In this document: positions 27,101 to 64,000 of the stretch, in pieces
Layout: every line of letters begins with the position of its first letter
Numbering within the stretch: position 1 is the first letter of the stretch
Origin: Haliotis rubra
Lineage: Eukaryota
Reading direction: 5' to 3'
Length of the DNA stretch: 64,000 nt
Assembly (NCBI RefSeq): GCF_003918875.1
Contig: NW_025766558.1
Span: 2,480,001-2,544,000 of the forward strand
The notes under the pieces: model-generated
The model's input: only the letters and a program-made list of their open reading frames with translations
Database searches by the model: none
What the model was told of the DNA's origin: nothing
Made by a program: the position numbers and the translations under genes

Positions 27101-30100
27101 GGGAGATATACTTGTAGTAACATAGTAGCATACTGGTTCTAGCAGGAGATATTGCTTATAGTAACATAGTAGCATACCGGTTCTAGCAGGGAGATACGGT
27201 AGTAACATAGTAGCATACTGGTTCTAGCAAAGGGAGATATACTTGTAGTAACATAGTAGCATACTGTGGTTCTAGTAACACATTAGCATACTGGTTCTAG
27301 CAGGGAGATATACTTGTGGTAACATACCATACCGGTTCTAGCGGAGGAGATATACTAACATAGTAGCATACCGGTTCTAGCAGGAGATATACTTGTAGTA
27401 ACATAGTAGCATACCCGGTTCTAGCGGGGAGATATACGTGTAGTAACATAGTAGCATACCGGTTCTAGCGGGGAGCTGTACTTGTAGTAACATAGTAACC
27501 GAGTTGGTTCTAGCAGGGAAATATAATTGTAGTAACATAGTAGCATACTGGTTCTAGAGGGGAGATATACTTGTAGTAACATAGTAGCATACCGGTTCTA
27601 GCAGGGAGATATACTTGTAGTAACATAGTAGCATACTGGTTCTAGCGGGGAGATATACTTGTAGTAACATAGTAGCATACCGGTTCTAGCGGGGAGATAT
27701 ACTTGTAGTAACATAGTAGCATACTGGTTCTAGCAGGGAGATATACGTGTAGTAACATAGTAGCATACCGGTTCTAGCAGGGAGATATACTTGTAGTAAC
27801 ATAGTAGCATACTGGTTCTAGAGAGGGAGATATACTTGTAGTAACATAGTAGCATACCGGTTCTAGCAGGGAGATATACTTGTAGTAACATAGTAGCATA
27901 CTGGTTCTAGAGGGAGATATACTTGTAGTAACATAGCACATAGTAGCATACCGGTTCTAGAGGGGAGATATACTTGTAGTAACATAGTAGCATACCGGTT
28001 CTAGCAGGGGAGATATACTTGTAGTAACATAGTAGCATACCTGGTTCCTAGCAGGAGGAGATATACTTGTAGTAACATAGTAGCATACTGGTTCTAGCAG
28101 GGATATACTTGTGTAGTAACATAGTATACATACTAGCAGGAGATATACTTGTAGTAACATAGTAGCATACTGGTTCTAGCAGGGAGATATACTTGTAGTA
28201 ACATAGGTAGCATACTGGTTCTAGCATAGTAGATACTGGTTCTAGTACTTGTAACATAGTAGCATACCGGTTCTAGCAGGGGAGATATACTTGTAGTAAC
28301 ATAGTAGCATACTGGTTCTAGCAGGGAGATATACTTGTAGTAACATAGTAGCATACTGGTTCTAGCGGGGAGATATACTTGTAGTAACATAGTAGCATAC
28401 TGGTTCTAGCGGGAGATATACTTGTAGTAACATAGTAGCATACTGGTTCCGTGTCATAGCAGGAGATATACTTGCAGTAGCATACCGCTTCATACTGGTT
28501 CTAGAGGGGAGATATACTTGTAGTAACATAGTAGCATACCGGTTCTAGCGGGAGATGTACTTTGTAGTAACATAGTAGCATACTGGTTCTAGCAGGGAGA
28601 TATACTTGTAGTAACATAGTAGCATACTGGTTCTAGCGAGGGAGATATACGTGTAGTAGTACATAGTAGCCGAGCTGGTTCTAGCAGGAGATGTACTGCT
28701 TGTAGTAACATAGTAGCATACTATGGTTCTAGCGGGAGATATACTTGTAGTAACATAGTAGCATACCGGTTCTAGCGGGGAGAGATATACTTGTAGTAAC
28801 ATAGTAGCATACTGGTTCTAGCAGGGAGATATACTTGTAGTAACATAGTAGCATACTGGTTCTAGCAGGGAGATATACTTGTAGTAACATAGTAGCATAC
28901 CGGTTCTAGCGGGGAGATATATACTTGTAGTAACATAGTAGCATGCCGGTTCTAGCAGGGGATATACTTCTAGTAACAGTAACATAGTAGCATACTGGTT
29001 CTAGCAGGGGATATACTTGTAGTAACATAGTAGCATACTGGTTCTAGCAGGAGATATACTTGTAGTAACATAGTAGCATACCGGTTCTAGCAGGGAGATA
29101 TACTTGTAGTAACATAGTAGCATACCGGTTCTAGAGGGGAGATATACTTGTAGTAACATAGTAGCATACCGGTTCTAGCAGGGAGATATACTTGTAGTAA
29201 CATAGTAGCATACCGGTTCTAGAGGGGATATACTTGTAGTAAAATAGCAGCATACCGGTTTTAGCGGGAAGATATACTTGTAGTAACATAGTAGCATACC
29301 GGTTCTAGGGGAGATATACTTGTAGTAACATAGTAGCATACCGGTTCTAGCAGGGAGATATACTTGTAGTAACATAGTAGCATACTGGTTCTAGCAGGGA
29401 GATATACTTGTAGTAACATAGTAGCATACCGGTTCTAGCGGGGAGATATACTTGTAGTAACATAGTAGCATACTGGTTCTAGCAGGGAGATATACTTGTA
29501 GTAACATAGTAGCATACTGGTTCTAGCAGGGGAGATATACTTGTAGTAACATAGTAGCATACCGGTTCTAGCAGAGATATACTTGTAGTAACATAGTATA
29601 CTGGTTCTAGAGGGGAGATATACTTGTAGTAACATAGTAGCATACTGGTTCTAGTGGGGAGATATACTTGTAGTAACATAGTAGCATACCGGTTCTAGCG
29701 GGGAGATGTAGTTGCAGTAACATAGTAGCATACTGGTTCTAGAGGGGAGATATACTTGTAGTAACATAGTAGCATACCGGTTCTAGCGGGGAGATATACG
29801 TAGTAACATAGTAGCATACTGGTTCTAGCGGGGAGATATACTTGTAGTAACATAGTAGCATACCGGTTCTAGAGAGGGGATATACTTGTAGTAAAATAGC
29901 AGCATACCGGTTTTAGCGGGAGGATATACTTGTAGTAACATAGTAGCATACCGGTTCTAGTGGGGAGATATACTTGTAGTAACATAGTAGCATACCGGTT
30001 CTAGCGGGGAGATATACTTGTAGTAACATAGTAGCATACTGGTTCTAGCGGAGGAGAAATACTTGTAGTAACATAGTAGCATACTGGTTCTAGCGGGGAG

Positions 30101-30238
30101 ATATACTTGTAGTAACATAGTAGCCGAGCTGGTTCTAGCAGGGAAATATAATTGTAGTAACATAGTAGCATACCGGTTCTAGAGGGGAGATATACTTGTA
30201 GTAACATAGTAGCCGAGCTGGTTCTAGCAGGGAAATAT
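24136..30238. repeat. 6.1-kb satellite, ~44-45-bp unit, roughly 135 copies
   Basis: Unit GGAGATATACTTGTAGTAACATAGTAGCATAC(T/C)GGTTCTAGC(A/G)G. Confidence 0.98.
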
Positions 30239-32538: not shown

Positions 32539-32644
32539 ATGGCGGCGGCCACAGCCGCTGATTCGGGCGAAAAGTCGGCAACAGCCTCAGGTGGCGTTCA
32601 AGAACATTTGTATAAAGTACTCGTAATCGGAGAGTTTGGTGTAG
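32539..32644 (+). CDS. Rab32: Rab32-like exon 1 (MAAATAADSGEKSATASGGVQEHLYKVLVIGEFGV)
   Basis: aaaATGGCG start, HLYKVLVIGE motif, donor G|gtaag. Confidence 0.92.
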
Positions 32645-35600
32645 GTAAGATAACCCTTCAAGTATGCCGTGAAGTTCCACAACTTGATTCATACATGACA
32701 GTCAATAACTGACAAGAGCTAGGTCCACCCCGATCGAGCAATTACTTACACTCGACTGGACAACAAGTCCCGTGAGTTCGACATGTCAGGGATAACAATA
32801 CAAACCGCCGGTCGAAATACATTTCCTCTATCAAAGATTAAAGTATTCAAATAGTTTTTGTGGAAACGTTTTGAAAACTTTGAGATGAGTGTGTTATCGA
32901 ACACTTTTATCAGCAGAAGGAAAGTTCAATCGATAAAATCCATAGAAAAAAAGGTTTCAGTAAATCGACAAACTATACGTGAATGTAGAACATGACAATT
33001 TCTTAAACACGGGAGCATGTATTCTAGAAAGTTGTTTTTTTTAATTAATGTTATTCATCTATTTTGTCCTGAAAACTGTTGAAATTGGCTGTTGTACCTC
33101 AGCTGACATATTGAAAACTGATCTTGAATTACTATGACCTCATCAACTACATGCATTTAGTGTTTGCTATTCCCTACAGTCACCACCTGTGTATGCACCT
33201 CGGTATCAGGTGTCTCCCTCTGTCTACAGCAACACACATGTATCACAACACTTGACTATCTATTGCTCGACATTCAATCATTGTAATAGCAACCCAGTAC
33301 ATATCAACAACACAGGCACTATTTTCTAATAACAATCTATTCATGCAACAGGTGGGACTTTTTATTACAAGTTGAATGGACAATTAGATGGACTCACAAA
33401 GTGCCCCAATGCTATGGATCAACATTTTGTTTTCAGGAAGTGTCATGAAAAAATTGCACGGTGACTATGAGAGGTCGTCAAAATTATGACAAGCATTAGG
33501 AAGTGTTATTGATATTATTTTCACTACATAAAAAAATGAAAAACCTCTGATCCCCCTCTTGTAATAAATGACTGGCTGATTACTTGCAGTAGAACTCAAT
33601 TCAATTACTCTGTTTCAACATTTTATTTCCACAGGCAAGACATCAATCATCAGAAGGTATACTGAAGGTAAGATGGCATGAAAATCTGTCCTTGGTTTAT
33701 TATTGTTTGCTTCTTCCAGTCCCATTTCACCAACCACCTCCGTGGTGTAGTGGTTAGAGCGTCCGCCCAGAGATGGGAAGGTCGCGGGTTCGATCCCTGA
33801 CTGCGTCATACCAAAAGACGTTAAAATATGGTACTTGTTGGTCCCTGTCTGGCTCTCGGCATTAATGGGTACAACAAGGACTGGTCGGCTCGGAGACAGT
33901 ATAATGTGTCTGAGTGGGGTATTCATGCTTCACTGCGGCATGGTATCTCAGTGGGCTAGCACTATAAAACCAGCTTCAGTCTGGGCTAGTACAAGCAGCC
34001 GCACATACACATACACACGCATGCACGTCGTCATATGAGCGAAATATTCTCAAGCACGACGTTAAACCCAATTTCACCTCACCTCACCAATTTCACCAAC
34101 TAAATCACTGTCTCTCACATGCACACAGTCTCACACTCTCATACTGACATATTGTCACTTTCACACAGATTCACACTCACAGACACATTCATACTCACTC
34201 ACTAACACACGTACAGCCTTGTCACTGATTTACCAAAGATATGTTTACAGGGATCTATTTTATCAAAGAGTCCTGAGACATTAAGTCTTCAGGAAAAGAA
34301 CACAAAAAACACTGGAGAATCCTCCTTGGTGTAAACCTGACATGATACATTGTCACCATGACGACACCAGCTCCAGGAGACTTGCTAATGGTGTTTCACA
34401 ACCAGGCCTCTGTGTATCTTGGATCCGTGAAGAGCCGGGTTAGAATTGGTCTTCAGTAACCCATGCTTGTCATAAGAGACGACTAACAGGATTGGGTGGT
34501 CAGGTTCGTTGACTTGGTTGACATATGTCATTGTATCCCAATTGTGTAGATCAATGTTCATGCTGTTGATCACTGGATTGTCTGGTCCAGATTTGAATAT
34601 TTACAGACCACTGCCATATAGCTGGAATATTGCTGAGTGCAGCATTAAACAACAAACCAAACCAACATCAGTGTATCCCGTTCCGCATCTCGAGACTTCA
34701 AGAATATGTTCAATATGAAGTCAGTGATCTCTCTGGCAAGCTTTAGTTGGGTTTTTTGCTCCCTGAAGATATACAATCAGTAAATTATTTAGTGATGGAA
34801 TTTATATCCCCTACTGTCTGATTCAGAATCTTGCAATGTATGTCCTGTGGGTTTTCAGATTGTGCAATGAAAACTTACACTAGCTGAAAACCACTACAAG
34901 TATGCCCTCATCATCTTCGTATATTTATTTACTTATTTGATGCAGCTCTTATGATGTTTCATTTGGAGTAATGACATTACACATAACATGACATTTTTCC
35001 ACACAAATAGCAATACTTTGTTGCAATTTTTCTTTGTAGTACAATGTATTTCTGTATCTGTATTGGAGCTTCTGACAAATATCAGCAGTAGATCCTGTCA
35101 TATGACTGTGTGGCTCCATGACAGGCATTCAAATCATTATATACTCGTTAACTTCATCACAGAAAAAAGATTGTTCATAATACTTTTTTAAATTGTCACC
35201 ACTCCTAACCTCCAGTCCTGCAGTACAGAGAGCTACAAAGTAGCTGAAGGATTGCAGACTGTCATAAAACAGCCAATTTATATAGATTCTTTGTTATCAT
35301 CCTTTTGTATAGTAAAACAGAAACCTATATATTAATTTTTGTGAGTGTGTTGTCAATTAAGTTATTTAGATGGCCTAGAATCATGGCTGTTGAAAGCGAA
35401 CATTAGATCAAATTAAAACAATTCTGCTTGCATTTAAAGATAAAAACAACAACCCTGTTAGTGCCGTTATCTTACTGGTAAAGCATGCCTTTTGTAAACG
35501 TTCATTCAAAACAACAACCCTGTTAGTGCCGTTATCTTACTGGTAAAGCATGCCTTTTGTAAACGTTCATTCAAAACAACAACCCTGTTAGTGCCGTTAT

Positions 35601-38600
35601 CTTACTGGTAAAGCATGCCTTTTGTAAACGTTCATTCAAAACAACAACCCTGTTAGTGCCGTTATCTTACTGGTAAAGCATGCCTTTTGTAAATGTTCAT
35701 TCAAAACAACAACTCAGTACATCAAATACATTCAAAAAGATATTACAACATATTATGATACCACAAAATATATCAGTTGTACTACCTACAGTTATGATAA
35801 ATATATTTGTCACTTGCCATCTGTACTAATGGTTTTCAAGGATTTTGTTGATAAATAATGTATATATTTGCATAAACTGTTGATAATATATATGAGGCTT
35901 ATTAGTGTATCCGGACATCTCTACTGGTACAGAAAATAAGAATTTTGTGAATTGCTTTTATGTACCCGATATGACATGACATGACGTGATGGCATGTGAT
36001 GAGCTTGTACATCGGATGAAGTGATGATGTGTCAGATGTGTTCTGTACCATGTAAACCTGCGTAAAAATGGAAAATAGTACCCAAAATATTAATAACAAA
36101 ACTACCATTGAAACGCTAAACAATACAGTTGTTTAATTAAAGTGAATCTGTTTCCTGCTTATCAACGTTGACAGTATTGCCTGACTGAGATCCACAATGC
36201 CGAGTAAGCAGTAGTCTCTTGTCAAGCACATGGCAACTTCACAGCTGCTGCTTCTGTCAATCTGGGAATATCAGTTACTATGGCAACCACAATTTTCATT
36301 GTTGTTTTTAGAGTATTAAATTCTTTGCCTGAAATATCTGGGGTTTTGTGCTGTGTGTTCCACTAGGACAATACAACCCTTCACTGAGCATGTGATGAAA
36401 ATTCCTTCAGGTTGAACAAAATGGCAAAATAAGCGCAATTAAAGGGGAATGGACACTAAATATACTACCAAAAAATAAACTGTTCACATTGTAAACCAAA
36501 TATGTATTGGAACTACAAAAAACAGGAACAAGCCCAGTAATTAGTGAATTGAATTCATGAACACATGCAACACATCTGAGCATCTTGAAAAACTGCATGT
36601 ACCAAATGAATGTCAAAAAACTGCATGTACCAAATGAATGTCAAAAACTGCTTTCACTTTGGGAAGTTTAATTGTTTGATGTTTGATCATTCAAAAAATT
36701 AAACGGCTAATGAAGCGCACATCATGCCACGACTCACAACTGCACAACATAATGAGGCTATTGGGATCGTCCATGGGGATTGTCTCAACATCAGGGGCCT
36801 GCACATTTCCACTGCCATCATATAACCACTGTTGAGACATTATGAGAACAATTATGAAATTGCTGATCGACGTCCCCACGTCATAATGCCAAGGCAGGAC
36901 AGATGGATACAAGTGACCATCTCCTGCACTCTTTCCAGACTGCCAGGACTGCTCAGGACTTGCAGGACTTTGGTCTATCCTCCCCACTGTCAGGAACCTC
37001 CTCTATCATTACAGGATACGACCACATAATGTCATTAAGTAAACTGTCATAGGTGGTGCTGAAATAATGTCCATCAACCTTGGTCATGGTGGAGGAGTTT
37101 TATGGGGGTCAAAATTTTCGGATACTTTAGTGGTAGGTACATGTGTGATTCCTGACATGATATCATGAGATCTGGTGGGTACATGTGTGATTCCTGATGT
37201 GATATCATGAGATCTGGTGGGTACATGTGTGATTCCTGATGTGATATCATGAGATCTGGTGGGTACATGTGTGATTCCTGACATGATATCATGAGATCTG
37301 GTGGGTACATGTGTGATTCCTGACATGATATCATGAGATCTGGTGGGTACATGTGTGATTCCTGACATGATATCATGAGATCTGGTGGGTACATGTGTGA
37401 TTCCTGATGTGATATCATGAGATCTGGTGGGTACATGTGTGATTCCTGATGTGATATCATGAGATCTGGTGGGTACATGTGTGATTCCTGACATGATATC
37501 ATGAGATCTGGTGGGTACATGTGTGATTCCTGACATGATATCATGAGATCTGGTGGGTACATGTGTGATTCCTGACATGGTATCATGAGATCATGAAGCT
37601 TTAATGTTTACTTAGATACAACTTACGTGATCTCATTGGGAAAGGTAGACGCATGAGAAATACATTTAGAAGAAATGTGGTTTGTAAGTTTGCAGTTTGG
37701 GCGATAATGATGACAATTAGACCTTTTTATTCCTTTGTCCATTGTTTGTCACTGGAAGAAACGATATCCCAAACCCCATATTCATAAGTTCTACTTAGTA
37801 ATGACAAGTGACTGCAGTGATGAGAAAACTCTGAGTAACTTGTTCCTTCCATGACGATATAGGTGTAACCGTCATGACATGTGTTTGTTAAATCTATTTC
37901 GATGTATGGGTTACACTATAGCACTTGTAATGTACTATTGATCGATAGATACATAATTGTGTATTCAGTGTGAACCCAGAACTGTATGGGGGGCACCGTT
38001 CGCCCAGTTACGCTGTATACAGAAATGTAACCTAGTCAAGATCAGAATACAGAAACAATATCCTACATCAAGTCCATTCCCCATTGTGTCCTTTTCTTGA
38101 TCAGAATTGTCATACTGTTGTATTAGATCCATCGGATTTTGTAATATACACAATAACGAATATTTCGCGATGCACAATACCACTCGCAATCGGTTGAACT
38201 ACATACGACTTCGGTTTTGGGGTGTGGAATATGGGCTCGTCCCCAGTTTAGGGTACCGGGTATGTTTCTGTATTTGGACATTGTTTAGGGTACATTTCTG
38301 CATACAGAAACACACCTCCGGTACATATCTGTAGTACCTGTGCCAACAACGATTCCTTCATCCCGAGTTGTCTAAACTGCTGCAATTCTCTATGACCTGC
38401 ATTACTTCCAACTTCATGCATGAGCCTGACACCAGGTAATGGAACTGGATTACCATTTGAAGCAGCGTTAAACTCACTCAGAATTGTGTGGACAAATTGA
38501 GTTGACTTAGGGTGTTCAAATAAAGTTAGTGATGGGTTTATATTGGAACATGAACCAAGCTGTCACAGACCTGTCCTGCTCATTTGCCTGGCAGTCTGTC

Positions 38601-41600
38601 GCTACGACAAGATAACACTGTACCAGACTCCCACAGTGTCGGGTGACGTTGATGAAGTGGTGTAAATCAGAACGGCTAATTAACGTCCACCATTGCCACA
38701 ATGGTATATTAGCATATCGCAGCTGTTGCACCACTGAGGCAAGATTACAAGCACCATGCTTGTTTGAACAAAAACTGTAAGGTCATACACTGCCTTGCCT
38801 CACCTGGACCTGGGAAGTCTCATCAGGGCGTGGTCCCATGGGCACCTGAAGTGGTGTTGGGTTGCTGGTGTCGGTGGCAGGTGTCGGGTGGTCTGTTGAC
38901 AGGCTAGAGTAGAGTCAGGATACACAGGTAATATTGAGTCATCATTACAATCTGTTTATAACTGAGTTATTGTAAGACATTGAATGTTTGTTGTAGCTTC
39001 TATCATCTGCCAGGGTTTCACATGGAAGCATTGCAGTTGAAATGTGTTTATGAGTAGGTTTACATTATTCCAGTTATAGCAAGGTCTGTCAGCCTGAAGC
39101 TGGAAGTGATGCAGATCATAGAGGTTTGATGTAACCCGCTAGGTCTATACTGCTATGACTTTCAACCTTTGGTTAAACCAGCTTGTATATTAGGTAATTT
39201 CAGATGTGAAGAGTTTGTAGAGATTGAGCGCTGAGCAGTCAGTTGAGTAAATGAGATGAGAAAATCTAGACTTGCTTCATTTACAACCATAGCATTAGTG
39301 CTGGGTGGAAGAGAAAATGTTAGAGTGTAGGACTGTGAAACAGGCTTGTAATGTGCTGTCTGTAGACTGAACCACTCTATCGTCAGTAGATGAGTGTTAG
39401 AAGGAGGGAAGGGGTCAGTCAATCCGCTGGTCATCCCTGTCATTACAGGCCTTGCTCCTCCATTGGTATCAAGGCCTCAGTGCTAATAGACTCCCAGCGA
39501 CAAATGATGGATATCAACAGCTTCATCAATGTCTTCGCTGTAATACAAAGTTTGTAATCAAATAATTTTTTAGCACTCCGTCAGGAGGTAATTTTTGTCA
39601 GTTTTTGATGTAGTTTTCAATATTCTTTTTGCATTAAGATGTAATAAGCAATTCTTTCTGACAGCCTCAGTTTGTGTCTAAACTGCCGGCTTAAAAAGAG
39701 GAGGCAGAGAGATCTGTAGCCCCAGTTAATGACAGTGTGATAAGATTGATGTGACAGTGATCAGTGGTGGGGAAAGTATGATCTGAGAGGGGTCATTAGT
39801 GGGGGGACAGTCTCTCTCTCTCCATCCACCCTCCTGCAGGAGGAGAGAAACAGTGGATGGAGAGTTGGGATGGGGCTTGGGGATCCGATAGTTTCAACTC
39901 GATATGTTTGAGTTTTTAATATCATATTTTATAATTAACTGCATCAACTTTTTCCTAAGTGAAGACAGATCGTTACTCGCATGATAACAGGTGCTATCAG
40001 CTTTACTGAAACACTGAATTGAAAAACTGAAAAAAATCTTAAATCCATTTATCAGTTCTGTCTCCTTAGATAATACAGCATCTAAAACGCCACACAGATA
40101 TTGCATTATATAGTTGTAATTTCCATGTAAATTGCAGTATCCTTGTATACTTCTATAAGATGGGAAAACTGACAACAGGAAGATGGACATGTTGTATTCT
40201 GTAACATATGTTATATTTGGGATTACACTTCTTAGTAAAGTACAGATTCCAGTACTTTTGTTGGGTTCAGTCCCATCCGGGATTCAAACCCACACCCTCA
40301 GAGTCCACTTTCTAAATGTCATTGTGTAATCATGTTGTGTTCTGCAGAAATGGATTATTAATAATTAATGATAATAATTGTTTGTTGTTTGATGCTGAAC
40401 TGTACAAAATGTCATGATACAGCTTCAATGGTGGCGTCTGCCATCATCAGTGGTCCTCAATAGTACGTGCCTGTCGTGGATGTCACACAAGATGCAGATG
40501 CTGTCAGTCGCTACAATTACAGCTGTCCCTAGTGGCAGGAACATCACTTAATCAGTTCTGAGGTCACTTGTGCAGAGACATATCATTTATTCCTTCACTG
40601 AATTATTCATAACATGTATTCATGTATGTCAGTGACTGTAAGCATTGGCCAGATTGTCTGCCAGATTACAATAAAATTCAGATTAAGCCACTTCCCAGCT
40701 CTAGGTATTATCTGCTCTTGGTCATTCTTTGGCCCTTACGACCCATGAAGAGGGTTAGAATTGGTCTTCAGTAACCCATGCTTGTCGTAAGAGGCAACTA
40801 ACGGAATCGGGTGGTCAGACTCACTGACTTAAATGTCATCATATCCCAGTTGTGTAGATAGGTGCTTATGGTATGTTAATCACTGGATTGTCTGGTCCAG
40901 ACTTGATTATTTACAGACCGCCACCATATGGCTGGGATATTGCTGAGTGACGTTAAACAACAAACCAACCAACCAAACCTTTGCCTTTTACAAATGTAAG
41001 AGTGGATAGTAATTAGCAACAGAAGCTATATGTGTCCAGTCCACCTTCAGTCACAAACTGCTGATCAGTTTCCTCGATGTGTGATATAGATAGTGTACTT
41101 GCAGACAGATGGATTGTACAATACTGGATTGAATTTCTTGCAGGATATTTCTCACCCAACTATAAACTGACCATCGGGGTGGACTTTGCCCTAAAGACAG
41201 TAGACTGGGACAAGAACACCAAGGTCAACTTACAACTGTGGTAGGTCAACTTACAGCTGTGGTGGGTCAGCTTACATCTGTGGTAGGTCAGCTTACAACT
41301 GTGGTAGGTCAACTTACAACTGTGGTAGGTCACTGTGGTAGGTCAACTTACAACTGTGATAGGTCAACTCAACTGTGGTACAACTTAAACTGTGGTAGGT
41401 CAACAACTGACAAACTGTGGTAGGTCACAACTGTGGTAGGTCAACTTACAACTGTGGTAGGTCAACTTACAACTGTGGTAGGTCAACTTACAACTGTGGT
41501 AGGTCAACTTACAACTGTGGTAGGTCAACTTTCAACAACTGTGGTAGGTCAACTTACAACTGTGGTAGGTCAACTTACAACTGTGGTAGGTCAACTTACA

Positions 41601-44600
41601 ACTTACATGGTGGTAGGTCAGCTTACAACTGTGATAGGTCAACTTACAACTGTGGTAGGTCAACTTACAACTGTGGTAGGTCAACTTACAACTGTGGTAG
41701 GTCAACTTACAACAACTGTGGTAGGTCAACTTACAACTGTGATAGGTCAACTTACAACTGTGGTAGGTCAACTTACAAACTGTGGTAGGTCAACTTACTG
41801 TGGTAACTGTGGTAGGTCAACTTACATCTGTGGTAGGTCAACTTACAACTGTGGTAGGTCAACTTACAACTGTGGTAGGTCAGCTTACAACTGTGGTAGG
41901 TCAACTTACAACTGTGGTAGGTCAACTTACAACTGTGATAGGTCAACTTACAACTGTGGTAGGTCAGCTTACAACTGTGGTAGGTCAACTTACAACTGTG
42001 GTAGGTCAACTTACAACTGTGATAGGTCAACTTACAGCTATGGTAGGTCAGCTTACAACTGTGATAGGTCAACTTACAGCTATGGTAGGTCAGCTTACAA
42101 CTGTGATAGGTCAACTTACATCTGTGGTAGGTCAACTTACAACTGTGGTAGGTCAACTTACAACTGTGGTAGGTCAACTTACAACTGTGGTAGGTCAACT
42201 TACAACTGTGGTAGGTCAACTTACAACTGTGGTAGGTCAACTTACAACTGTGATAGGTCAACTTACAACTGTGGTAGGTCAACTTACAGCTCAACTTACA
42301 ACTGTGGTAGGTCAACTTACAACTGTGGTAGGTCAACTTACATCTGTGGTAGGTCAACTTACATCTGTGGTAGGTCAACTTACAACTGTGGTAGGTCAAC
42401 TTACAACTGTGGTAGGTCAACTTACATCAACTTACAACTGTGGTAGGTCAACTTACATCTGTGGTAGGTCAACTTACAACTGTGGTAGGTCAGCTTACAA
42501 CTGTGGTAGGTCAACTTACATCTGTGGTAGGTCAACTTACAACTGTGGTAGGTCAACTTACATCTGTTGTAGGTCAACTTACATCTGTGGTTGGTCAACT
42601 TATATATCATACATACATTATTATTACTTTTAAAAATTACATGTATTTGTTTGTACATTTTTAAATGAAAGTATTACTGATTACCTTTGGTATGTTTCAG
42701 GGACATTGCAGGACATGAGAGGTTTGGTCACATGACCCGAGTGTACTACAAATATGCGTAAGTCATCTGGCAGTTCTGGCAGTTAAAAACCAAAACTACT
42801 AACATGTCTAAGACGTCAAATTATTATTAGGAATGATCCATTGGAGATCTATGGAACAGGAATTTTTTTTAAATAAATTGATTGTTCAGAAATGAATAGT
42901 TTGCTGGCAGTGTTGAAAAAAAATGAACAGTTTGTTTTATAGAATAATACACAAAATCATTCATTTGTTTGTAAATAGTGTAAATGAATTAATTGTTTGA
43001 TAAAAATAATCCCCCCACATAACACACAAAGTAGAAATTTATCACTTCTGATCGATAATTTTTGTTATTTCATTTTCAGAATTGCAGCAATCATATGCTT
43101 TGACTTGTCAAGGTAATTATGTTTCAGTTGTTACTTGTGACAGAGTCCTTGTACATAACAATGATGACAGACTGGGTGTTCTACAATGTTTAACTGGCAA
43201 ATATTCTCATTTATGCTTAATTTTTGTTTGACATTTTAGATTGCCCATATTTGATTGATTTATCATTTCAAAAACATATTTGATTTTGCAACATTTCATT
43301 TCAGACCAGCCACATTTGATTCAGTTCTAAAAGTAAGTTGGATGTTTAATCAATATGTCATGCCCTGTTCAAACATCATTAACAGTTAGTGTTCCGCCTG
43401 ATCCTGAGATAGTCCTTGCAAATTATTTCTTTTGCAAAAATTTACTGAAAAAAGTCAAGAAGTACAAGCGTTCCTTCTACTTTAGACCCCTCTTTGTCTT
43501 TAAACAACTCTTTTTCCATGTATTTTTAATATATGTGAACTATAATTGTAGCCTCTCTGGAACTTTTATACAATTATTTTTGAAGTTCTGCTTGACATTT
43601 CTATGGATGTTTGTTTTCATGTAACTTTTTCTCTTGATTTCCAGTGGCTGAATGATGTAAATTCCAAAGTGATGCTAGCCAATGAACAGCCAGTACCAAT
43701 CATGCTGCTGGCCAATAAGGTGAGAGTTCGACTATGGCTGCTCTCATTTTCCTGGTGTTGCATGCCTTTTGATCCTCGGGAGAAGCTGAGTATAATTAGG
43801 GCAGGTGACTCCATACTTACCTCTTGGATAACTCTTCCGCTCATTGAGTCTTTTATCATCATAAGGATCAGCACCTATTTCTGATCACACACACTTGCCA
43901 ATCAAACACACCATTATGATCCCCGGGATGACATACATTGTTGTACACCTGTTCTGTACATTATACCTGTTTTTACACCTGTCACACTGTTCCCAGTTTT
44001 ACATGTGTCACTCTGTTCCTAGTTTTACATATGTCACACTGTTCCCAGTTTGACATGTGTCACTCTGTTTCCAGTTTTACATATGTCACACTGTTCCCAT
44101 TTTTACATGTGTCACACTGTTTCCAGATTTTACATGTGTCACACTGTTTCCAGATTTACATGTGTCACACTGTTCCTACTTTTACATGTGTCACACTGTT
44201 CCTAGTTTTACATGTGTCACACTGTTCCTAGTTTTACATGTGTCACACTGTTCCTAGTTTTACATGTGTCACTCTGTTCCCAGTTTTACATGTGTCACAC
44301 TGTTCCTAATTTTACATGTGTCACACTGTTTCCAGATTTACATGTGTCACACTGTTCCCAGTTTTACATGTGTCACACTGTTCCCAGTTTTACATGTGTC
44401 ACACTGTTCCCAGTTTTACATGTGTCACACTGTTTCCAGATTTACATGTGTCACACTGTTCCAGATTTACATGTGTCACACTGTTCCCAGTTTTACATGT
44501 GTCACACTGTTCCTAGATTTACATGTGTCACACTGTTCCCAGTTTTACATGTGCGACATGGTTCCCAGTTTTTTACATGTGTCACACTGTTCCCAGATTT

Positions 44601-47600
44601 ACATGTGTGACATGGTTCCCCAGATTTACATGTGTCACACTGTTTCCAGATTTACATGTGTGTCACACTGTTTCCAGTTTTACATGTGTCACACTGTTCC
44701 CAGATTTACATGTGTCACACTGTTCCCAGTTTTACATGTGTCACACTGTTCCCAGATTTACATGTGTCACACTGTTCCCAGATTTACATGTGTCACACTG
44801 TTCCCAGTTTTACATGTGTCACACTGTTCCCAGATTTACATGTGTCACACTGTTTCCAGATTTACATGTGCCACACTGTTCCCAGTTTTACATGTGTCAC
44901 TGTTCCCAGTGTTTCTCAAATTCAGTGAAATGGCCTGAAAACACAAAACTGATTTGAAGTAAAACAGAGGTATAGATTATTTAAATATTCAGTCACTGTA
45001 CAGTCACATGTAGAGTTGATGGGGCTGGGCGTGACAGCTGTCTGGTTACCCATGGCAACTGGCCATTACTGTATGGCAGCCACAAACACAGGCCTTCACT
45101 TGTCTCCCACTTAGTGCTGCCTCCCCTTCAGCCAACATGGCAGGTTGTCTTGTTCTTGATTATGTGATATTTTATGTTCAGAATTTGAATACATAAGTAT
45201 TTCTTTAATTCAGTTTGTTTTTATATATGTATGAGATGGAATTATTAATTCAATAAGTACATGTGTCAGTTCTTGTGTCGCCTAATGTCATTGTGGGAAA
45301 TGTATTGGATTTGTGTTATGTCTTAAAGTCTTAGTTGACATTAGGCAATTTGAAGGTGTGATCTATTAGTCATACCAGTGATCTCTGTGATCTGTTTGTT
45401 CTGCCGATGATGTCTGTGATTTGTTTGTTCTGCCTGTAATATCTGTGAAATCCAACTGAAATTCAGAAATTTTATATAAATCCCAAAAGGCAAAGTCATT
45501 TGCTAATAGATTCTAATGTATCTATTACCAGAGACCATATAATATGGTCTCTGCTATTACGCATGTGTTGTTTCCATAGCAACATCCAACAAAATGGCAG
45601 ACAACTACAAAGTTGTAAACAATATGGGTTTCTTTAATTTAGGTCCTTAACAGATTGATGATGAACGTATGCAATATAATGTACTTTATATCACAATACT
45701 TGAATCATTATATTATATGTGTGATCTGTTGTGTGTATGTGGGGTTGATCTGTTACAGTGTGACATCGATGATGTAAATGCAGACGTAGGCATCCTCAAC
45801 AAGTTCTGCAAGGACTACAACTTTATAGGCTGGTTTCAGACATCAGCCAAGTCTGACATCAATATAGGTAAGTTTCAGACATCGCCAAGTCTGACATCAA
45901 TATAGGTAGGTTTCAGACATCGGTCAAGTCTGACATCACTGCAGGTAGGTTTCAGACATCAGGCCAAGTCTGACATCAATATACAGGTAGGTTTCAGACA
46001 TCAGCCAAGTCTGACATCAATAGGTAGGTTCTGACATCAGCCAAGTATGACATCAATATAGGTAGGTTTCAGACATCAGCCAAGTCTGACATCAATATAG
46101 GTAGGTTTCAGACATCAGCCAAGTATGACATCACTATAGGTAGGTTTCAGACATCAGCCAAGTCTGACATCAATATAGGTAGGTTTCAGACATCAGCCAA
46201 GTCTGACATCAATATAGGTAGGTTTCAGACATCGGCCAAGTCTGACATCAATATAGGCTGGTTTCAGACAGGCCAAGTCTGACAGACATCGATCAAGTCT
46301 GACATCAATATAGGTAGGTTTCAGACATCAGAAGTCTGATCAATATAGGTAGGTTTCCAAGTCTGACATCAATATAGGTAGGTTTCAGACATCAGCCAAG
46401 TCTGACATCAATATAGGTAGGTTTCAGACATCAGCCAAGTCTGACATCAATATAGGTAGGTTTCAGACACAAGTCTGACATCAATATAGGTAGGTTTCAG
46501 ACATCAGCCAAGTCTGACATCAATATAGGTAGGTTTCAGACATCGCCAAGTCTGACATCAATATAGGCTGGTTTCAGACATCAAGTCTGACATCAATATA
46601 GTAGGTTTCAGACATCAGCCAAGTCTGACGTCTGGTTTCAGACATCAATATAGGCTGGTTTCAGACATCGGCCAAGTCTGACATCATTATACATCATTAT
46701 AGGTAGGTTTCAGACATCGCCAAGTCTGACATATAGGCTGGTTTCAGACATCGCGGGCTAAGTCCGACATCAATATAGGTAGGTTTCAGACATCAATACA
46801 GGTAGCAGACATCGCCAAGTCTGACATCAATATAGGTAGGTTTCAGACATCAGCCAAGTTCGACATCAATATAGGTTTCCAGACATGGTAAGTCTGACAT
46901 CAATATAGTAGGTTTCAGACATCGCCAAGTATGTCAATATCAGACACATCAGCCAAGTCTGACATCAATAGGTAGACATCGCCAAGTCTGACGCTAAGTA
47001 TAAGTTTTCAGACATCAGGCCAAGTCTGACATCAATATAAGGTGGTTTCAGACATCGCCAAGTAAGTCTGACATCAATAATAGGTAAGCTGGTTTCAGAC
47101 ATCGCCAAGTCTGACATCAATATAGGTAGGTTTCAGACATCAGCCAAGTCTGACATCAATATAGGTAGGTTTCAGACATCAGCCAAGTCTGACATCAATA
47201 TAGGTAGGTTTCAGACATCAGCCAAGTCTGACATCAATATAGGCTGGTTTCAGACATCAATATAGGTGGTTTCAGACATCAAGTCTGACATCAATATAGG
47301 TAGGTTTCCGACATCACATCAATATAGGTAGGTTTCAGACATCGGCAAGTATGAATGTCTGACATCAATATAGGCTGGTTTCAGACATCGGCCAAGTCTG
47401 ACATCAATATAGGCTGGTTTCAGACATCAGCCAAGTCTGACATCAATATAGGTAGGTTTCAGAAGATAGCAAAATCTGGATCAAAAGTGTATTGATATGA
47501 GATACACAGCAGTAGGTTGACGAGGTCTGTTAGTCACAGGTACAGTATGTTAGAAGAAGTAGGTCAGAGCTGATAACATTAATATAGATAAGATAAGGAT

Positions 47601-49046
47601 GGACATATTTGACGTTGTTGTAAACAGTTACAGTATTCATAAATAATATATTAGGCTGCCATAACATTTTCCCAGGTTTATAGAAAGAAATTCTGATTTC
47701 TAGTTTGTATAGGATTAGTTTCCTAAATATGTCATTTATTGGGCATGTAGAAAGTTAGGGAAATTGTGACCAGGTCCAGAAATATAATCTTGAGAATCTG
47801 TTTTAACATGTGTGATATCAAGCATGAGCTGCCCAACCTGTGAAGATCCAGGTTAGAAGTGATCTTCAGTAACCCATGCTTGTCATAAGAGGCAACTTAC
47901 GGGATTGGGTGGTCAGTCTCGCTGACTTGGTTAACACATGTCATCAGTTCCCAATTGCGTAGATTGATGCTCATGCTGTTGATCACTGGATTGTCTGGTC
48001 CAGACTCAATTATTTACAGACCGCCGACATACAGCTGAAATAATGCTGAGTGCGGCATTAAACAACAAACCAACCAGGATGTAAGATGAGCTCCCCTGCA
48101 GCATGTGAGTCGTGATCACATTACACATTTAAGTAGGTATAGATGTATAACTGTACAGAGTTTGATGGAGAGTTATTTCACACTGACCAGTGACATGCAT
48201 TAGTGAGTGAGACTATGTATGTTTAACCTTAGACCACAAAGGCTTTGACATTGCAAAATGAATAAAAATATTTTGAATGCTTTTAAAAACATGTCCACAT
48301 TAGTGAGTGAGTTTAGTTTTACGCCGCACTCTGCAATATCCCAGCTATATGGCGACGGTCTGTAAATAATCGAGTCTGGACCAGACAATCCAGTGATCAA
48401 CAGCATGAGCATCGATCTGCGCAAGTGGGAACCGATGACATGTGTCAACCAAGTCAGCGAAACTGACCACCCGATCCAGTTAGTCGCCTCTTACGACAAG
48501 CATAGTCGCCTTTTATGGCAAGCACATGGGTTGCTGAAGACCTATTCTATCCCGGATCTTCACGGGTCTATGTCCACATTAACACATGAAGAGGAAACAT
48601 TTTATGGATAGACAACTTCTTTACTGCAATAGATGGGACATTTCAGTGTAGATGCTAACATCATTATCAAGCAAGTGATGGTGTTAGCATCGACACCAAA
48701 ACATTGCATCTATTGCAATAAAAGATGTCTATCATTAAAAATTGTTCTTCTTCATTACACCAGCTTCTAAATGCCACTAAAGAAGACACATTAAAGTATT
48801 TTAAGAACATAGGACATAGTGAATGCAGTTGTGACATTTCACCTGTAGAAATGTAGAAACTCAGTGACATCTAATTTTCCTTCAGAAAAATCTATGAACT
48901 TCCTTGTGGAGCACATCTTGTCCCTCCCCACGGAGAGCCAGCAGCCTAGCGAGCATGTCACCCTACAGTCCTCCGTCTCCTCCAGAGATGACTCCCCCGA
49001 ACAGCCCCGAACCCCACACAGACAGGAGAGTGGATGCTGCAGCTAA
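32539..49046 (+). CDS. Rab32: Rab32/Rab38-subfamily small GTPase (possibly the invertebrate Rab32LO-type paralogue), 9 exons, 232 aa: join(32539-32644,33635-33667,41144-41240,42701-42757,43080-43112,43305-43332,43645-43719,45759-45867,48886-49046)
   Basis: Hand-spliced GT-AG exons with consistent phases total 699 nt. Motifs: G1 GEFGVGKT, effector TIGVDFALK (FALK typical of Rab32/38/29), G3 WDIAGHERFGHMTRVYY, G4 ANKCD, G5 FQTSAK, C-terminal GCCS prenylation motif. Exact paralogue not resolved. Confidence 0.93.
33635..33667 (+). CDS. Rab32: Rab32-like exon 2 (GKTSIIRRYTE)
   Basis: tttccacag acceptor, G|gtaag donor, completes the P-loop. Confidence 0.92.
33733..34088 (+). mobile_element. Family B SINE in Rab intron 2
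   Basis: Near-identical to 16624-16996; TSD about ATTTCACCAAC. Confidence 0.9.
34423..34666 (+). mobile_element. SINE-like family C (no tRNA head, CCCGTGAAGATCCGGG 5' end)
   Basis: Multi-copy in the window; tail GCTGGAATATTGCTGAGTGC..TTAAAC(AACC)n. Confidence 0.88.
35442..35712. repeat. 65-bp tandem repeat x4
   Basis: AAAACAACAACCCTGTTAGTGCCGTTATCTTACTGG... near-perfect copies. Confidence 0.95.
36724..37030 (+). pseudogene. Decayed Tc1-family transposase (N-terminal HTH region)
   Basis: MPRLTTAQHNEAIG and ADRRPHVIMPRQDRWI resemble Tc1 MPRL...AIG and DRPRSGRPRVTT.RQDRYI. Confidence 0.6.
37134..37592. repeat. 42-bp minisatellite, about 11 copies
   Basis: GTACATGTGTGATTCCTGA(CA/TG)TGATATCATGAGATCTGGTGG. 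Confidence 0.97.
38012..38307. mobile_element. Old MITE-like element with imperfect long inverted repeats
   Basis: CTGTATACAGAAATGTAACCTA ... TAGGGTACATTTCTGCATACAG. Confidence 0.55.
40741..40980 (+). mobile_element. SINE-like family C
   Basis: Similarity to the other copies. Confidence 0.88.
41144..41240 (+). CDS. Rab32: Rab32-like exon 3 (GYFSPNYKLTIGVDFALKTVDWDKNTKVNLQLW)
   Basis: ttcttgcag acceptor, switch I/FALK motif, donor TG|gtaggt. Confidence 0.93.
41241..42602 (+). repeat. 21-bp minisatellite made of the exon-3 3' end plus splice donor, about 65 copies
   Basis: Unit GT+AGGTCAACTTACAACTGTG; the 19-mer is identical to the last 19 nt of exon 3. Confidence 0.97.
42701..42757 (+). CDS. 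Rab32: Rab32-like exon 4 (DIAGHERFGHMTRVYYKYA)
   Basis: tttcag acceptor, switch II, donor GC|gtaag. Confidence 0.93.
43080..43112 (+). CDS. Rab32: Rab32-like exon 5 (IAAIICFDLSR)
   Basis: ttttcag acceptor, AG|gtaat donor, phases match the neighbouring exons. Confidence 0.88.
43305..43332 (+). CDS. Rab32: Rab32-like exon 6 (PATFDSVLK)
   Basis: tttcag acceptor, AAA|gtaag donor, Rab-like TF.SV.KW. Confidence 0.88.
43645..43719 (+). CDS. Rab32: Rab32-like exon 7 (WLNDVNSKVMLANEQPVPIMLLANK)
   Basis: tttccag acceptor, AAG|gtgag donor, G4 NK. Confidence 0.92.
43977..44910. repeat. 26-bp minisatellite in Rab intron 7, about 36 copies
   Basis: TGTCACACTGTTCCCAG(T/A)TTTACATG. Confidence 0.97.
45529..45553. 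mobile_element. 25-bp palindromic transposon footprint with a 7-bp TSD
   Basis: CTATTAC-CAGAGACCATATAATATGGTCTCTG-CTATTAC. Confidence 0.8.
45759..45867 (+). CDS. Rab32: Rab32-like exon 8 (CDIDDVNADVGILNKFCKDYNFIGWFQTSAKSDINI)
   Basis: ttacag acceptor, G5 TSAK, donor G|gtaagt. Confidence 0.92.
45868..47463 (+). repeat. 39-bp minisatellite made of the exon-8 3' end plus splice donor, about 40 copies
   Basis: Unit GTAGG+TTTCAGACATCAGCCAAGTCTGACATCAATATAG; the exon ends GCTGG plus the same 34 nt. Confidence 0.97.
47836..48076 (+). mobile_element. SINE-like family C
   Basis: Similarity to the other copies; flanking ATGAGCT(G/C)CCC duplication. Confidence 0.88.
48303..48569 (-). mobile_element. 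SINE-like family C (subtype with a duplicated hairpin)
   Basis: 12-bp TSD ATGTCCACATTA; full length. Confidence 0.92.
48886..49046 (+). CDS. Rab32: Rab32-like exon 9 (EKSMNFLVEHIL...QESGCCS*)
   Basis: ttccttcag acceptor, hypervariable tail, CC prenylation motif, TAA. Confidence 0.9.
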
Positions 49047-57344: not shown

Positions 57345-60300
57345 CTGAAATGATAACAATACTTAATTCTACCACGATTATGAGGACATTTGTTCAGTTA
57401 CAACTCAGAATTTGACCCTATCCCTCCAACAAATTACCTCCCTTATATCACATATAGGACACTGGTTACAACCATTAATTACAATTGGTATCATTGATTT
57501 ACGATCTATACCCGCCATATAGCTGCAATATTGCTGAATGCGTCGTAAAACTAAACTCACTCACTCACTACAAGTGCAGCGTAAAACTAAACTCACTCAC
57601 TCATTACAATCTATACAGGTGAATTATTTGTGAATATGTCGGAACATTGTTATATCTTTAATATTTCAGGTCTTTGAAAAATACTTGCATTTCTCTCCCT
57701 TAAATGATCATAGTTTTAGTTTTGAATATGTTCAAGTTTAAAATTAATTAAATAGACAATTGCTGAAGCAGAAATTCAGTAGTAATTTCTCGACAACATA
57801 CCATCTCATCTGAGGTCTCCACTGCCACAAACAGCACCTCTTCCTGTTCTGCTTCGCTAAGGTCTGGCTGATTGGGCAGAAGTTTGGCTGTGTGGTCAGG
57901 TGTGCTCTCCACAGAATGGTCCGAACTCTCCATACCACGGTCCATTGTCATTGCCAGGGGTTCTTCTGTCACTGGCTCTTGATGAGTAGCCTCAATAATA
58001 TCTGCCACTGGCTCTTGATGAGAATCGTTTATTAAATCGGTTGCTGGCTCTTCTTCAATAGATTCTAAAGAACACATGAGAAATGTTTTCATCTAATGTA
58101 ACATCCCATTAACTTATATTTTGTTCTTAAACTCCTAATCACCTCATGATTTCATCAAGTTTGAGGAGAAAAGCTAATGAGTTACATAGAATTACTGATT
58201 ATCTGTCCTCAAGTGTTAATCCTGAGCCTTTGGTGAGAGGATTATAACATTTATTCATGAGCGACATAAAATATGTAATTCCAAATAGGTTATTCTACAT
58301 ATTACTCATTGATATTTTACTAGGCATGACTAAAAAGACAGTTAATTGAAAGGACCATCAATGAGAAGAAATAATAATTTTCTATACCAAACTTGTGTCA
58401 TCAATGATCTCCTACATAAACTCTTCTCAAACAATGAAGCACTGTTATGCCATATGGCTTTGACAGACCAATCCATACTGAGAAAATATCAGACATTTAT
58501 TACCATATTCATTACATGTAATCATTCTACCGTTTTCACATTTTATGGGAAATTTTCATTGATATAACATTAGACCTATGAACAACATACCTTCTTGCAT
58601 GTCCTGTGATTCCTGACCAACAAATGTGGACCATTCATTTGCCATTACTGGATTACTGAAAGCATTGTTGGTCTCGTCTGCTGTCTCTTTGATGATCAGT
58701 TTTTCTGTGGTCTCAATGTCAATTTCAGACTTGGAAAATGTGACTTTCTTTGGAATTGGAGATTTTGTCTTCTTAGCCTTTTCTGAGGTTTCTGAATGCG
58801 CTACAGATTCACTAATCACGCTACCTGAGCGTTCTGAGCGACTCTGATCACTGATGATACTCCCTGAACACTCTGACATTCCATGTCTAGGTGTTCCCCG
58901 TATATCCTGCACGCTTCCCTCAAAAGCTGGGTTGTCTTCTTCAAGGGGACTGCTGGCCCTTGATGGGGGTTTGCTGGTCCGAGTGTCCAGGTGGGTTTGG
59001 TATTCAGACAGTAATTCACTTGTCCACCTCTCCTCACTGTAAACAAACTGTGCTGGAGCAAGATTCTCAGGAACAGTCTCTTCAGCCTCAGTTTCAGTAC
59101 TGCCAGATTTAGTTTTTTTACCTTTTGTTGGTGGTTTGTACAGATTCTCAGGTTCAAAGTCTGACAACGTCAGATCCTGTTGGCTCTGTAAAATTGAATT
59201 TAAAAATGCACCAGTTGTGAGATATGTAAAGAACTAAATATGTCCATTTGCTAAAATAAGGATTTGGGTATACAAAATGTAAGTGGATGCTAAGTCCTTT
59301 TCTCCCAAATAGCCGGATTTTGTAATCATTTTAGTAATTTGAGTCCAATTGTATCTTTTCCATACCTTTCGGTATCACTATCAGTGTGGAGATTATGATG
59401 ATCTGTTCCACCAAAATGACATTTCATACAACATGGGTTTCTGACAACTGCCCAAAGTTACAGATTGGATATAGGACATAACTTTAATGATATTCGCTTG
59501 AAAAAAACCAGACAAGTTTGTGAGTGAGTGAGTGAGTTTAGTTTTACGCCGCACTCAGAGATATTCCAGCTATATGGCAGCGGTCTGTAAATAATCAAGT
59601 CTGGACCAGACAATCCAGTGATCAATAGCATGAGCATCGATCTGCACAATTGGGAACCGATGACATGTGTCAACCAAGTCAGTGAGCCTGACCACCCGAT
59701 CCCGTTAGTCGCCTCTTACGACAAGCATGGGTTACTGAAGATCAATATTCTAACCCAGACCTTCACGGGTAGACCACTCTGACAACATGGACAAGCTACA
59801 AAATCACAACACAGTCCAAAGGTTAGCCTATTAAATGTCAGACGTAAGTATTCAGATATTTTCAGATCACCACCATGACAATGATGGCCACAACATGCTC
59901 AAGAGGTTTTCAAAATTTGACAAAGTATTTCATTATTTCAACATGTCTATGAATGTATAAGCTGTATAAAAAAACTTGCTTCAATAAGAATCCCAACCAA
60001 ATTCTAGTCTAAACATTACCATGACAGTGTGTGTATATTACAGACTTCTTTTACAAAAGCAGAACAGAAAGGGCATGTAATTGTCTAGTAACTATTACAG
60101 GGGTGGAAATAACTTTAAAATTGCTAGTGTACTCGGGTACAGTGGCACATGTAAAATCACTTGCCCTGATCATTTTTCCACTATACCGGCTGTTTTCTTG
60201 TTGATTTTTTAACTAAACAACATTATTAACATTGGAAAGTCAACTGGACACCGGTACAGTGTGATATACAAATTTGCTTGCCCGACCGAAAAGAACACTG

Positions 60301-63135: not shown

Positions 63136-64000
63136 TTTCCTTTTTTATTTTGAGTTGTTTCCCTTTGATAAAGGTATTTATAAAATATGGAATAGTCATG
63201 TTTATGAAAAATGATCCTTATGTTCACTCAATCGCAAAATTAAATGCTATGAAGCTATGATAAATGGTTATTTAATGATATTAGATGTTGTTATAAGGAA
63301 TTAGTTGGCGGTGAATGTTTTATAATGACAAAAGATTTAAAATTAGGTAGAAATCAACACTTGTAATTAGGACCGTGCAGTATTACCGGTACAGTATCTC
63401 GCGATACGATTATCGCGATATGGTTCAGATTCTGAAATATATTGGGTCATCCAAAGTGAGCTCCATTTGAATTATCTGACATCTCAACTCAGACAGGTTC
63501 TGGAGAAACAGCGGGCGATGGTAGAGCAGAAATCAGCGACGTGCATAAACGTGGATGTGCAATTGTGGATCCAATTGAGGAGATCTTCATGTATATACGT
63601 TATATAATTTATTTATTTTTAATATATGGATTTTTCATTTTTACTTGGTAAGAAGCACACGTGCGTTGTTGTTGTTTTTTTTCGATTTTTTGTTGTTGTT
63701 TTTGTTGGGTTTTTTTTTTGGTCGCAGGTAATGGACTCATTATTCTCTGGCGTTGACCTATTATATTGTTTTGGGTTTTGTTTTAAAACTAGTTTATATC
63801 AGTCAAACTTTACATGATAATAGGACATTATAGAGGTATTAAATAAACTTCCGTGTCGTATTCATTGGAAATTGTCTTACAAGCGTTGTAATAACATAGT
63901 AAATAACGGTACTTTGCTGGATGATTCTGATAATCAATCCTTGATTATCATATCATATAAACATATCATAACACTTTATGGGTAAATGGCGGCCCGCCAT

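Follow-up and report, generated by a model that had tools for sequence, protein, structure and literature searches.

The window, a stretch of 64,000 nucleotides from Haliotis rubra, carries on its forward strand a Rab32B-like gene (32539-49046) with nine coding exons and eight introns, all GT-AG, encoding a protein of 232 aa. The gene is assigned to the Rab32/38/29 family of GTPases by its best matches, to Rab32/38/7L1, and by its identity to the annotated Rab32B-like protein, all exons being 100% identical to H. rubra XP_046571212.1. The spliced gene model was compared exon by exon, with database proteins standing in for the joined protein; single exons, which are short, gave almost no matches as Pfam queries. 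Exons 1-3 lie at 32539-32644, 33635-33667 and 41144-41240, exons 4-6 at 42701-42757, 43080-43112 and 43305-43332, and exons 7-9 at 43645-43719, 45759-45867 and 48886-49046, the last of which ends the protein with GCCS and a stop.

Two minisatellites, both on the forward strand, span splice donors of this gene. The 21-bp array (41222-42602; 64.5 copies by TRF) makes up 93% of intron 3 and ends 98 nt ahead of the exon 4 acceptor, and the 39-bp array (45824-47463; 42.4 copies by TRF) makes up 53% of intron 8. A preliminary description of this DNA had placed the start of each array exactly at an exon/intron boundary; in fact they begin about one unit upstream, inside the exons, 18 nt (21-bp) and 43 nt (39-bp) ahead of the exon end, while its statement that the exon end is itself monomer 1 holds. 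These first monomers are formed by the last 17 nt of exon 3, with the AG ahead of them, and by the last 39-44 nt of exon 8. The 21-bp unit consists of the last 17 exon nt plus 4 intron nt, and the 39-bp unit of the final ~39 nt of the exon with the donor as its new head; in both arrays the unit spans the exon-intron boundary and the first unit is the real junction, as in 'mirage' minisatellites. The two arrays appear, as proposed earlier, to be of independent origin. Following the true donor of intron 3 at 41241, and counting it in, GTG/GTAGGT occurs 50 times in the 21-bp array, and the true donor of intron 8 at 45868 reads GTAAGT, with GTAGGT in most later units. Overall, GTAGGT or GTAAGT is kept in 50 of 63 (21-bp) and about 26 of 38 (39-bp) units, which makes these repeated splice signals in many units but not in all. 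In 7-8 intronic units of the 39-bp array, the head is the exon-type GCTGG, otherwise found only in the exon. Five further arrays in the gene (units of 65, 28, 42, 26 and 29 bp) touch no junction; among them, a 26-bp minisatellite (43971-44910, forward strand, 36 copies) lying away from junctions provides an internal control.

The AG-G microhomology formerly ascribed to both units is strong for the 39-bp array, where it lies in donor register (TATAG/G..GT, 9 of 11 positions), whereas in the 21-bp array the exonic AGGT matches intron positions +3 to +6 and not the donor. Donor-like microhomology was rejected as a general trigger, because in a scan of all donors of ten genes array-free donors gave equal or longer matches, and the array-bearing donors D3 of Haliotis and D8 of Pecten and Sinanodonta do not outscore array-free ones such as D2. 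The significance once attached to unit lengths in multiples of three is not borne out: only three of the seven unit lengths weighed (21, 39, 32, 23, 56, 43 and 39 bp) are such multiples (P 0.43), the orthologous unit of intron 8 is 32 bp in two Haliotis species, and the 21-bp unit contains an in-frame TAG.

Both tandem arrays are real. H. asinina, H. rufescens and H. cracherodii carry both of them at donors matching those of H. rubra, and they are therefore old and not assembly errors. An artefact of the H. rubra assembly has next to no probability given the matching arrays in three independent assemblies and a short-read contig depth compatible with tens of copies; in run X1 the summed depth on the 39-bp unit is ~43-57 times that of single-copy sequence, a rough figure and not a copy number. 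The one point in favor of error is that the 39-bp array is indel-rich (14% by TRF), so that single-unit details such as its 38-nt second unit may be wrong.

How these repeated donors are handled was followed in contigs from runs X2 and X4, which are presumed to be RNA and were compared with exon 8 plus two units. In both runs exon 8 is joined to exons 7 and 9 with the first donor in use (junction at 45867), and read-through contigs amount to ~1-3% of exon depth. No use of later donors was seen in the RNA-like contigs over exon 8, where rare or tissue-limited use would escape detection, and neither these contigs nor the RefSeq products examined include a longer isoform. For exon 3 the evidence is indirect, and the 232-aa models in four species together with the in-frame stop suggest that it is also spliced at the first donor. 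A frame-preserving ladder of alternative donors was ruled out by the in-frame TAG, which would be read from every donor after the first in the 21-bp array, by the 32-bp orthologous unit and by the lack of a longer isoform among these contigs and products.

A function of the arrays, in which U1 snRNP binds the repeated donors or these serve as alternative donors, copy number thereby tuning Rab32B splicing or level, would fit their retention for the age of the genus, the conserved 21-bp consensus and the human precedent of repeat length affecting splicing (PMC13747324, PMC10078293); moreover, no stop interrupts the reading frame of the consensus 39-bp unit and, intron 8 being the final one, products would escape decay. 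We nevertheless hold this to be very improbable, since species differ 4- to 10-fold in copy number and do not preserve unit length (39 to 32 bp), decoy donors are eroded in asinina and Sinanodonta, a stop follows from each later donor in this assembly, no later-donor isoform was found among the products and contigs named above, and arrays are missing from the orthologues of Gigantopelta, Patella, Aplysia, Mercenaria and Branchiostoma, the last mapped approximately.

The comparison of the four Haliotis species shows arrays that are unstable in copy number and stable in position. Copies range from 21 to 88 for the intron 3 array and from 4 to 42 for the intron 8 array, and run X10, from a related species, roughly suggests ~11-16. 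Intron 3 consists of array for 86-96% of its length and varies from 499 to 1889 nt, while its unique remainder stays at 71-98 nt, which supports the earlier proposal that the arrays could drive intron expansion. In rubra, rufescens and cracherodii the 21-bp consensus is the same as the copy in the exon, even as the introns differ by ~16-26%, and in three species nothing distinguishes the true donor of exon 8 from the decoys. The two exon-anchored arrays alone can be recognised in both the rubra/asinina clade and the rufescens/cracherodii clade; none of the 18 free arrays is shared (Fisher P 0.005), or 2 of 18 if two diverged arrays at the same place are counted (P 0.03). In rufescens and cracherodii the end of exon 8 has drifted from its own array at 4-5 codons, so that any re-seeding is not constant. 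Slower synonymous change beneath the units was not seen, synonymous sites there being no more conserved than elsewhere. The clade-shared anchored arrays and the exon-type units in the intron suggest that the exon copy acts as a lasting seed of the array.

In seven other mollusc orthologues examined blind, 4 of 35 arrays are independent junction arrays, two at donors (Pecten D8, Sinanodonta D8) and two at acceptors (Sinanodonta acceptor 6, Babylonia acceptor 8). Both blind donor arrays sit at the exon-8 donor (P about 0.02), which carries an array in three lineages, abalone, scallop and freshwater mussel. The junction excess is 2.3-fold in the blind set (P about 0.10), 4.6-fold for arrays of 10+ copies (P about 0.012) and 1.6-fold with the junction-free abalone arrays pooled in (P 0.24); whether it is significant varies with the filter on copy number and with a single borderline case (P 0.01-0.25). 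No Littorina locus orthologous to the gene was found. For seven arrays placed at random in the H. rubra gene, 0.17 donor-spanning arrays are expected, with P(>=2) of 0.013, or 0.045 with acceptors also counted, values that do not constitute a test, as the gene was chosen for its two-array pattern. A modest bias of arrays towards junctions is plausible, and to this extent the systematic, splice-site-anchored amplification proposed earlier retains some weight; its specificity for donors is not supported by two donor and two acceptor arrays.

Taken together, the observations are probably best explained by two tolerated, junction-spanning minisatellites of the mirage type, which are anchored in exons and longer-lived than free intronic arrays. 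Each would have arisen when a short stretch spanning a donor was duplicated in tandem, through replication slippage or unequal exchange aided by microhomology; this origin predates the split of the Haliotis clades, as the common position and register show. The spliceosome would take the most upstream donor, as seen at exon 8 and presumably at exon 3, and later copies would for this reason leave with the intron. Monomer 1, being coding, could neither be deleted nor decay, and it keeps exchanging sequence with the intron copies, as the exon-type intronic units show and the conserved consensus suggests; anchored arrays would outlive free ones as a consequence. This longer life, combined with the purging of exon-internal duplications, could yield a modest junction excess with no targeting machinery, the effect being an altered intron length and an unchanged protein. 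In support stand the clade-shared anchored arrays, the 21-bp consensus, the GCTGG units, first-donor use and the 32-bp unit change. Less easily accommodated are the drift at exon 8, the ordinary conservation of synonymous sites, an RNA record of presumed-RNA contigs from two runs at exon 8 only, and the blind 2.3-4.6-fold excess with both donor arrays at exon 8, neither of which persistence alone obviously predicts.

The last of these points would instead favor a biased birth of tandem duplications at exon-intron junctions, donors and acceptors alike, whether through breaks or stalled polymerases linked to co-transcriptional splicing, through R-loops or nucleosome edges, or through recurring AG/GT words that give microhomology. 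This corresponds to the 'systematic process' of the preliminary description, though not confined to donors. The four blind junction arrays, the 4.6-fold excess and the three lineages struck at exon 8 speak for such a bias, which we consider unlikely, given its filter-dependent significance, microhomology generally no stronger at array-bearing donors, and no junction match among 18 lineage-limited abalone arrays of the gene (0.78 expected); longer life likewise predicts an excess of large arrays. Chance and ascertainment, with minisatellite-rich abalone introns in which 0.17 expected donor matches per such gene imply two in about 1 gene in 80, and with a pooled blind excess of only 1.6-fold (P 0.24), appear more improbable still, as they leave unexplained both the repeated exon 8 matches and the sharing between clades of anchored arrays only. 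A new amplification process is not called for, as ordinary slippage with an exon-held seed accounts for the anatomy and the class is already described.

It is a tentative idea, more doubtful than not, that minisatellites are several-fold enriched at the splice junctions of molluscs, the exon copy being an undeletable re-seeding master that can take up synonymous variants from the array, and some junctions being recurrent hotspots; equally tentatively, the last Rab32B donor may be one, the cause lying in splicing or transcription. If true, this would be a way, general and measurable, for introns to grow and for sequence to pass between introns and coding exons, and should the junction excess and the hotspot at exon 8 be borne out across the genome, splice junctions would be linked to the birth or survival of tandem repeats. 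Taken singly, the loci are unremarkable representatives of a class already known. A donor followed by ~50 identical copies nonetheless offers a natural experiment on how strictly an invertebrate chooses the first donor, and the comparison of four species presents arrays that set intron 3 length and outlive free arrays. In practical terms, arrays of this kind are a source of error in gene prediction and read mapping, and could serve as length markers in abalone breeding.

Neither a study of junction arrays in molluscs nor a genome-wide one appeared in the literature searched, and a paper on abalone minisatellites describes no junction repeat (PMC6905558). What the present series adds is recognisable clade-sharing limited to the exon-anchored arrays, with exon-type units inside the intron, and four further independent junction arrays in seven mollusc orthologues, 1.6-4.6-fold over chance. 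In the Rogers model, introns are gained via tandem duplication of AGGT proto-splice sites (discussed in PMC3087553, PMC2812944). The abalone arrays likewise duplicate AG/GT-bearing sequence in tandem, but lengthen an existing intron and create none; intron gain was ruled out by the same 8 intron positions, those of introns 3 and 8 included, in all 11 mapped mollusc orthologues, so that the arrays are, as earlier maintained, related to this process yet distinct from it. The human ABCA7 intron-18 VNTR, with tens to hundreds of copies adjacent to the donor, is linked to aberrant splicing (PMC13747324); the abalone arrays resemble it in length and position, but no such effect was observed in the RNA-like contigs. 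A further relative is the 37-bp VNTR of human F7 IVS7, whose initial monomer contains the authentic boundary of exon and intron and whose later identical donors are silent, only the most upstream site being used (PMC1557585). The abalone first monomer also holds the real junction, with an exon-8 donor indistinguishable from its decoys in most of the species compared; F7 has 5-9 copies versus 42-64 in the rubra arrays, and its first-site rule was proven by mutagenesis, while in abalone first-donor use was observed in contigs. Together with F7, the arrays belong to the class of the amphioxus 'mirage' minisatellites of Adh3, the globins BflGb6/9, TnC and PGBD5, among which somatic instability has been observed at Adh3 (PMC3087553, PMC3902484). 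In contrast to these, the Rab32B-like arrays lie in a gastropod, copies are more numerous (42-64 in rubra, up to 146 in Pecten), and array age and exon-to-intron exchange can be traced over four Haliotis species.

The two minisatellites lie in a Rab32B-like gene of nine exons (32539-49046), in which all introns are GT-AG and which encodes a product of 232 aa. Its identity was searched one exon at a time, with full-length relatives found via a database protein; exon 3, searched alone, matches structures of Rab32, Rab38 and Rab7L1, and every exon is 100% identical to the H. rubra protein XP_046571212.1 (Rab-32B-like). According to TRF, the 21-bp array at the exon-3 donor comprises 64.5 copies (41222-42602) and the 39-bp array at the exon-8 donor 42.4 copies (45824-47463). 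They start 18 and 43 nt upstream of the respective exon ends, so that each exon end is itself the first monomer, as the preliminary description had proposed. The 21-bp unit consists of the final 17 bases of exon 3 with GTAG added, and GTG/GTAGGT occurs at 50 positions of this array, including the true donor (41241). When the frame is continued through this first donor, a TGG codon is finished and TAG follows, and every later donor of the array therefore entails a stop. At exon 8, the true donor (45868) is GTAAGT, about 25 units of the 39-bp array are headed by GTAGG, and 7-8 intronic units carry the exon-type head GCTGG. The consensus unit has no stop in frame; in this assembly the second unit measures 38 nt, and a stop follows all later donors. 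This short unit of an indel-rich array may be an assembly error.

The window contains no N. Five more TRF arrays in the Rab32B gene are all clear of junctions, and no arrays were found by TRF at the junctions of the adjacent multi-exon gene, DUF4706-like by synteny (about 57800-63150, minus strand), in its part inside the window. Upstream of the Rab gene lies a 44-bp array of 139 copies (24136-30238), and positions 1-990 hold a complex G-rich array, beginning upstream of the window, with 11 occurrences of the donor-like word CAGGAG/GTAAG. Intron 8 contains two oppositely oriented copies of a common abalone interspersed repeat (47845-48075 and 48300-48570, about 230 nt apart), which could pair in the pre-mRNA. 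An H. asinina isoform (P0271, isoform X2, 197 aa) has another N-terminus spliced onto exon 3, indicating an alternative first exon; none of the isoforms seen contained additional repeat units.

The orthologous loci of H. rufescens, H. asinina and H. cracherodii, with exons mapped exactly, bear arrays at both donors. The 21-bp array occurs in identical register in 21, 24 and 88 copies, respectively, and the exon-8 donor is followed by 4.4 copies of a 39-bp unit in H. asinina and by 18 copies of a 32-bp unit in H. rufescens and H. cracherodii, a derivative of the 39-bp unit that is 7 nt shorter. Since the same donors carry arrays in four species, both arrays predate the split of the abalone clades, an assembly artefact is ruled out, and a unit length divisible by three has been lost. 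The array makes up 86-96% of intron 3, and the number of copies determines how long this intron is (499-1889 nt). GTAGGT serves as the true exon-8 donor in three species and does not differ from the decoys there, so that position, not strength, selects the site. In H. rufescens and H. cracherodii, an 11-bp-based array stops 16 nt short of the exon-8 acceptor (L001:34150-34468, 29 copies; L003:31269-33479, 200 copies), and a 50-bp tandem array is made of the end of the common interspersed repeat (L001:32736-33035; L003:30035-30234).

Sequencing runs were selected by matches to the last exon and 3' region, none being recorded as RNA, and alignment of their contigs covered 45460-45944, that is, exon 8 and two units. 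Two runs, X2 (H. rubra) and X4 (a relative), show the pattern of RNA, with depth restricted to the exon and with loose ends that fit exon 7 on the upstream side (45757) and exon 9 on the downstream side (45867). The first donor is thus used at exon 8, where the contigs join at 45867; in X4, a single unbranched contig of 1119 nt spans both exon 8 junctions. Contigs running over this donor reach 1-3% of exon depth in X2, an upper guide for unspliced or later-donor molecules at exon 8. In the DNA run X1, summed depth over the 39-bp unit is, roughly, 43-57 times single copy, in line with about 42 copies.

Whether such arrays meet junctions by chance or by bias bears on the earlier proposal of a systematic, splice-site-anchored process. 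Random placement in the H. rubra gene predicts 0.17 donor-spanning arrays against two observed, although this P of 0.013 comes from a gene picked for its two donor arrays. In a blind set of Rab32B orthologues from seven non-abalone molluscs, 4 of 35 arrays span a junction against 1.72 expected (2.3-fold, P 0.10), rising to 4.6-fold (P 0.012) for arrays of 10 or more copies; leaving out a borderline Babylonia case gives P 0.25 and 0.06, respectively. Pooling the 35 arrays with 18 junction-free abalone arrays gives 1.6-fold (P 0.24). A modest junction excess for large arrays is therefore plausible. Specificity for donors did not hold, as the four comprise two donor and two acceptor arrays: an independent 23-bp array at donor 8 of Pecten maximus (about 146 copies, 3.3 kb, L009:13102-16414), a 56-bp array at donor 8 of Sinanodonta woodiana (L011:20255-20907), a 43-bp array of 58 copies at its acceptor 6, whose unit includes most of the 28-nt exon 6 (L011:12877-15377), and the borderline 39-bp arrays of Babylonia areolata, whose unit includes the exon-8 acceptor and which end 3 nt inside exon 8 (L010:15761-17277). 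Donor 8 is the site of both blind donor arrays (P about 0.02). In S. woodiana a 7-bp array also begins within donor 4 (L011:7328-7390), giving three junction repeats in a single gene. The emphasis on unit lengths in multiples of three is likewise not borne out: such multiples make up three of seven junction-array units, as often as chance would give, the orthologous exon-8 unit is 32 bp in two species, and the 21-bp unit contains an in-frame TAG. The AG-G microhomology said to bound both units is present at the 39-bp array, where the junction matches the sequence one unit upstream at 9 of 11 positions in donor register, but at the 21-bp array it is limited to AGGT against intron +3 to +6, off the donor. 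In a scan of donors, those without arrays carried equally long matches.

Both arrays with a first monomer inside an exon are recognizable in the two abalone clades, compared with none of 18 free arrays (Fisher P 0.005), or P 0.03 if two same-place intron 7 arrays, which may be diverged homologues, are counted. These 26-bp arrays occupy a similar place in all four abalones, with strongly different units (window 43971-44910; L001:30194-32725 in H. rufescens; L002:25797-25921 in H. asinina; L003:29443-30024 in H. cracherodii). Related units of the upstream 44-bp array are found at the matching place in H. asinina (39 copies) and H. rufescens (43 bp, 7 copies), so that some free arrays persist too. 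The 21-bp consensus is identical to the exon copy in H. rubra, H. rufescens and H. cracherodii, where introns are about 16-26% divergent, and 28 of 52 units in H. rubra and 9 of 21 in H. rufescens match exactly; the H. asinina array is old and eroded, with 2.8 differences per unit. Intronic 39-bp units headed by GCTGG can have obtained that head only from the exon copy or by a double mutation, and sequence has been copied from exon to intron within the array. Flow from intron to exon is only suggested by two shared synonymous variants, GAT of the H. rufescens exon in 8 H. cracherodii units and CAG of the H. asinina exon in H. rubra unit 2. Constant coupling of exon and array is argued against, since exon 8 of the Californian species (H. 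rufescens and H. cracherodii) has drifted away from its array and synonymous divergence beneath the repeat units is not reduced in the abalone exon comparison. The arrays would have been born by slippage, and an exon anchor may lengthen their life span.

The abalone arrays are real, old and tolerated junction-spanning minisatellites, probably without function, and of a kind already known. In amphioxus, tandem repeats spanning either exon boundary, termed 'mirages', leave splicing undisturbed (PMC3087553; PMC3902484). A donor-side VNTR in ABCA7 is able to affect splicing (PMC13747324). The human F7 intron-7 VNTR, of which the upstream donor is the only one used, has the same layout as the abalone arrays (PMC1557585).
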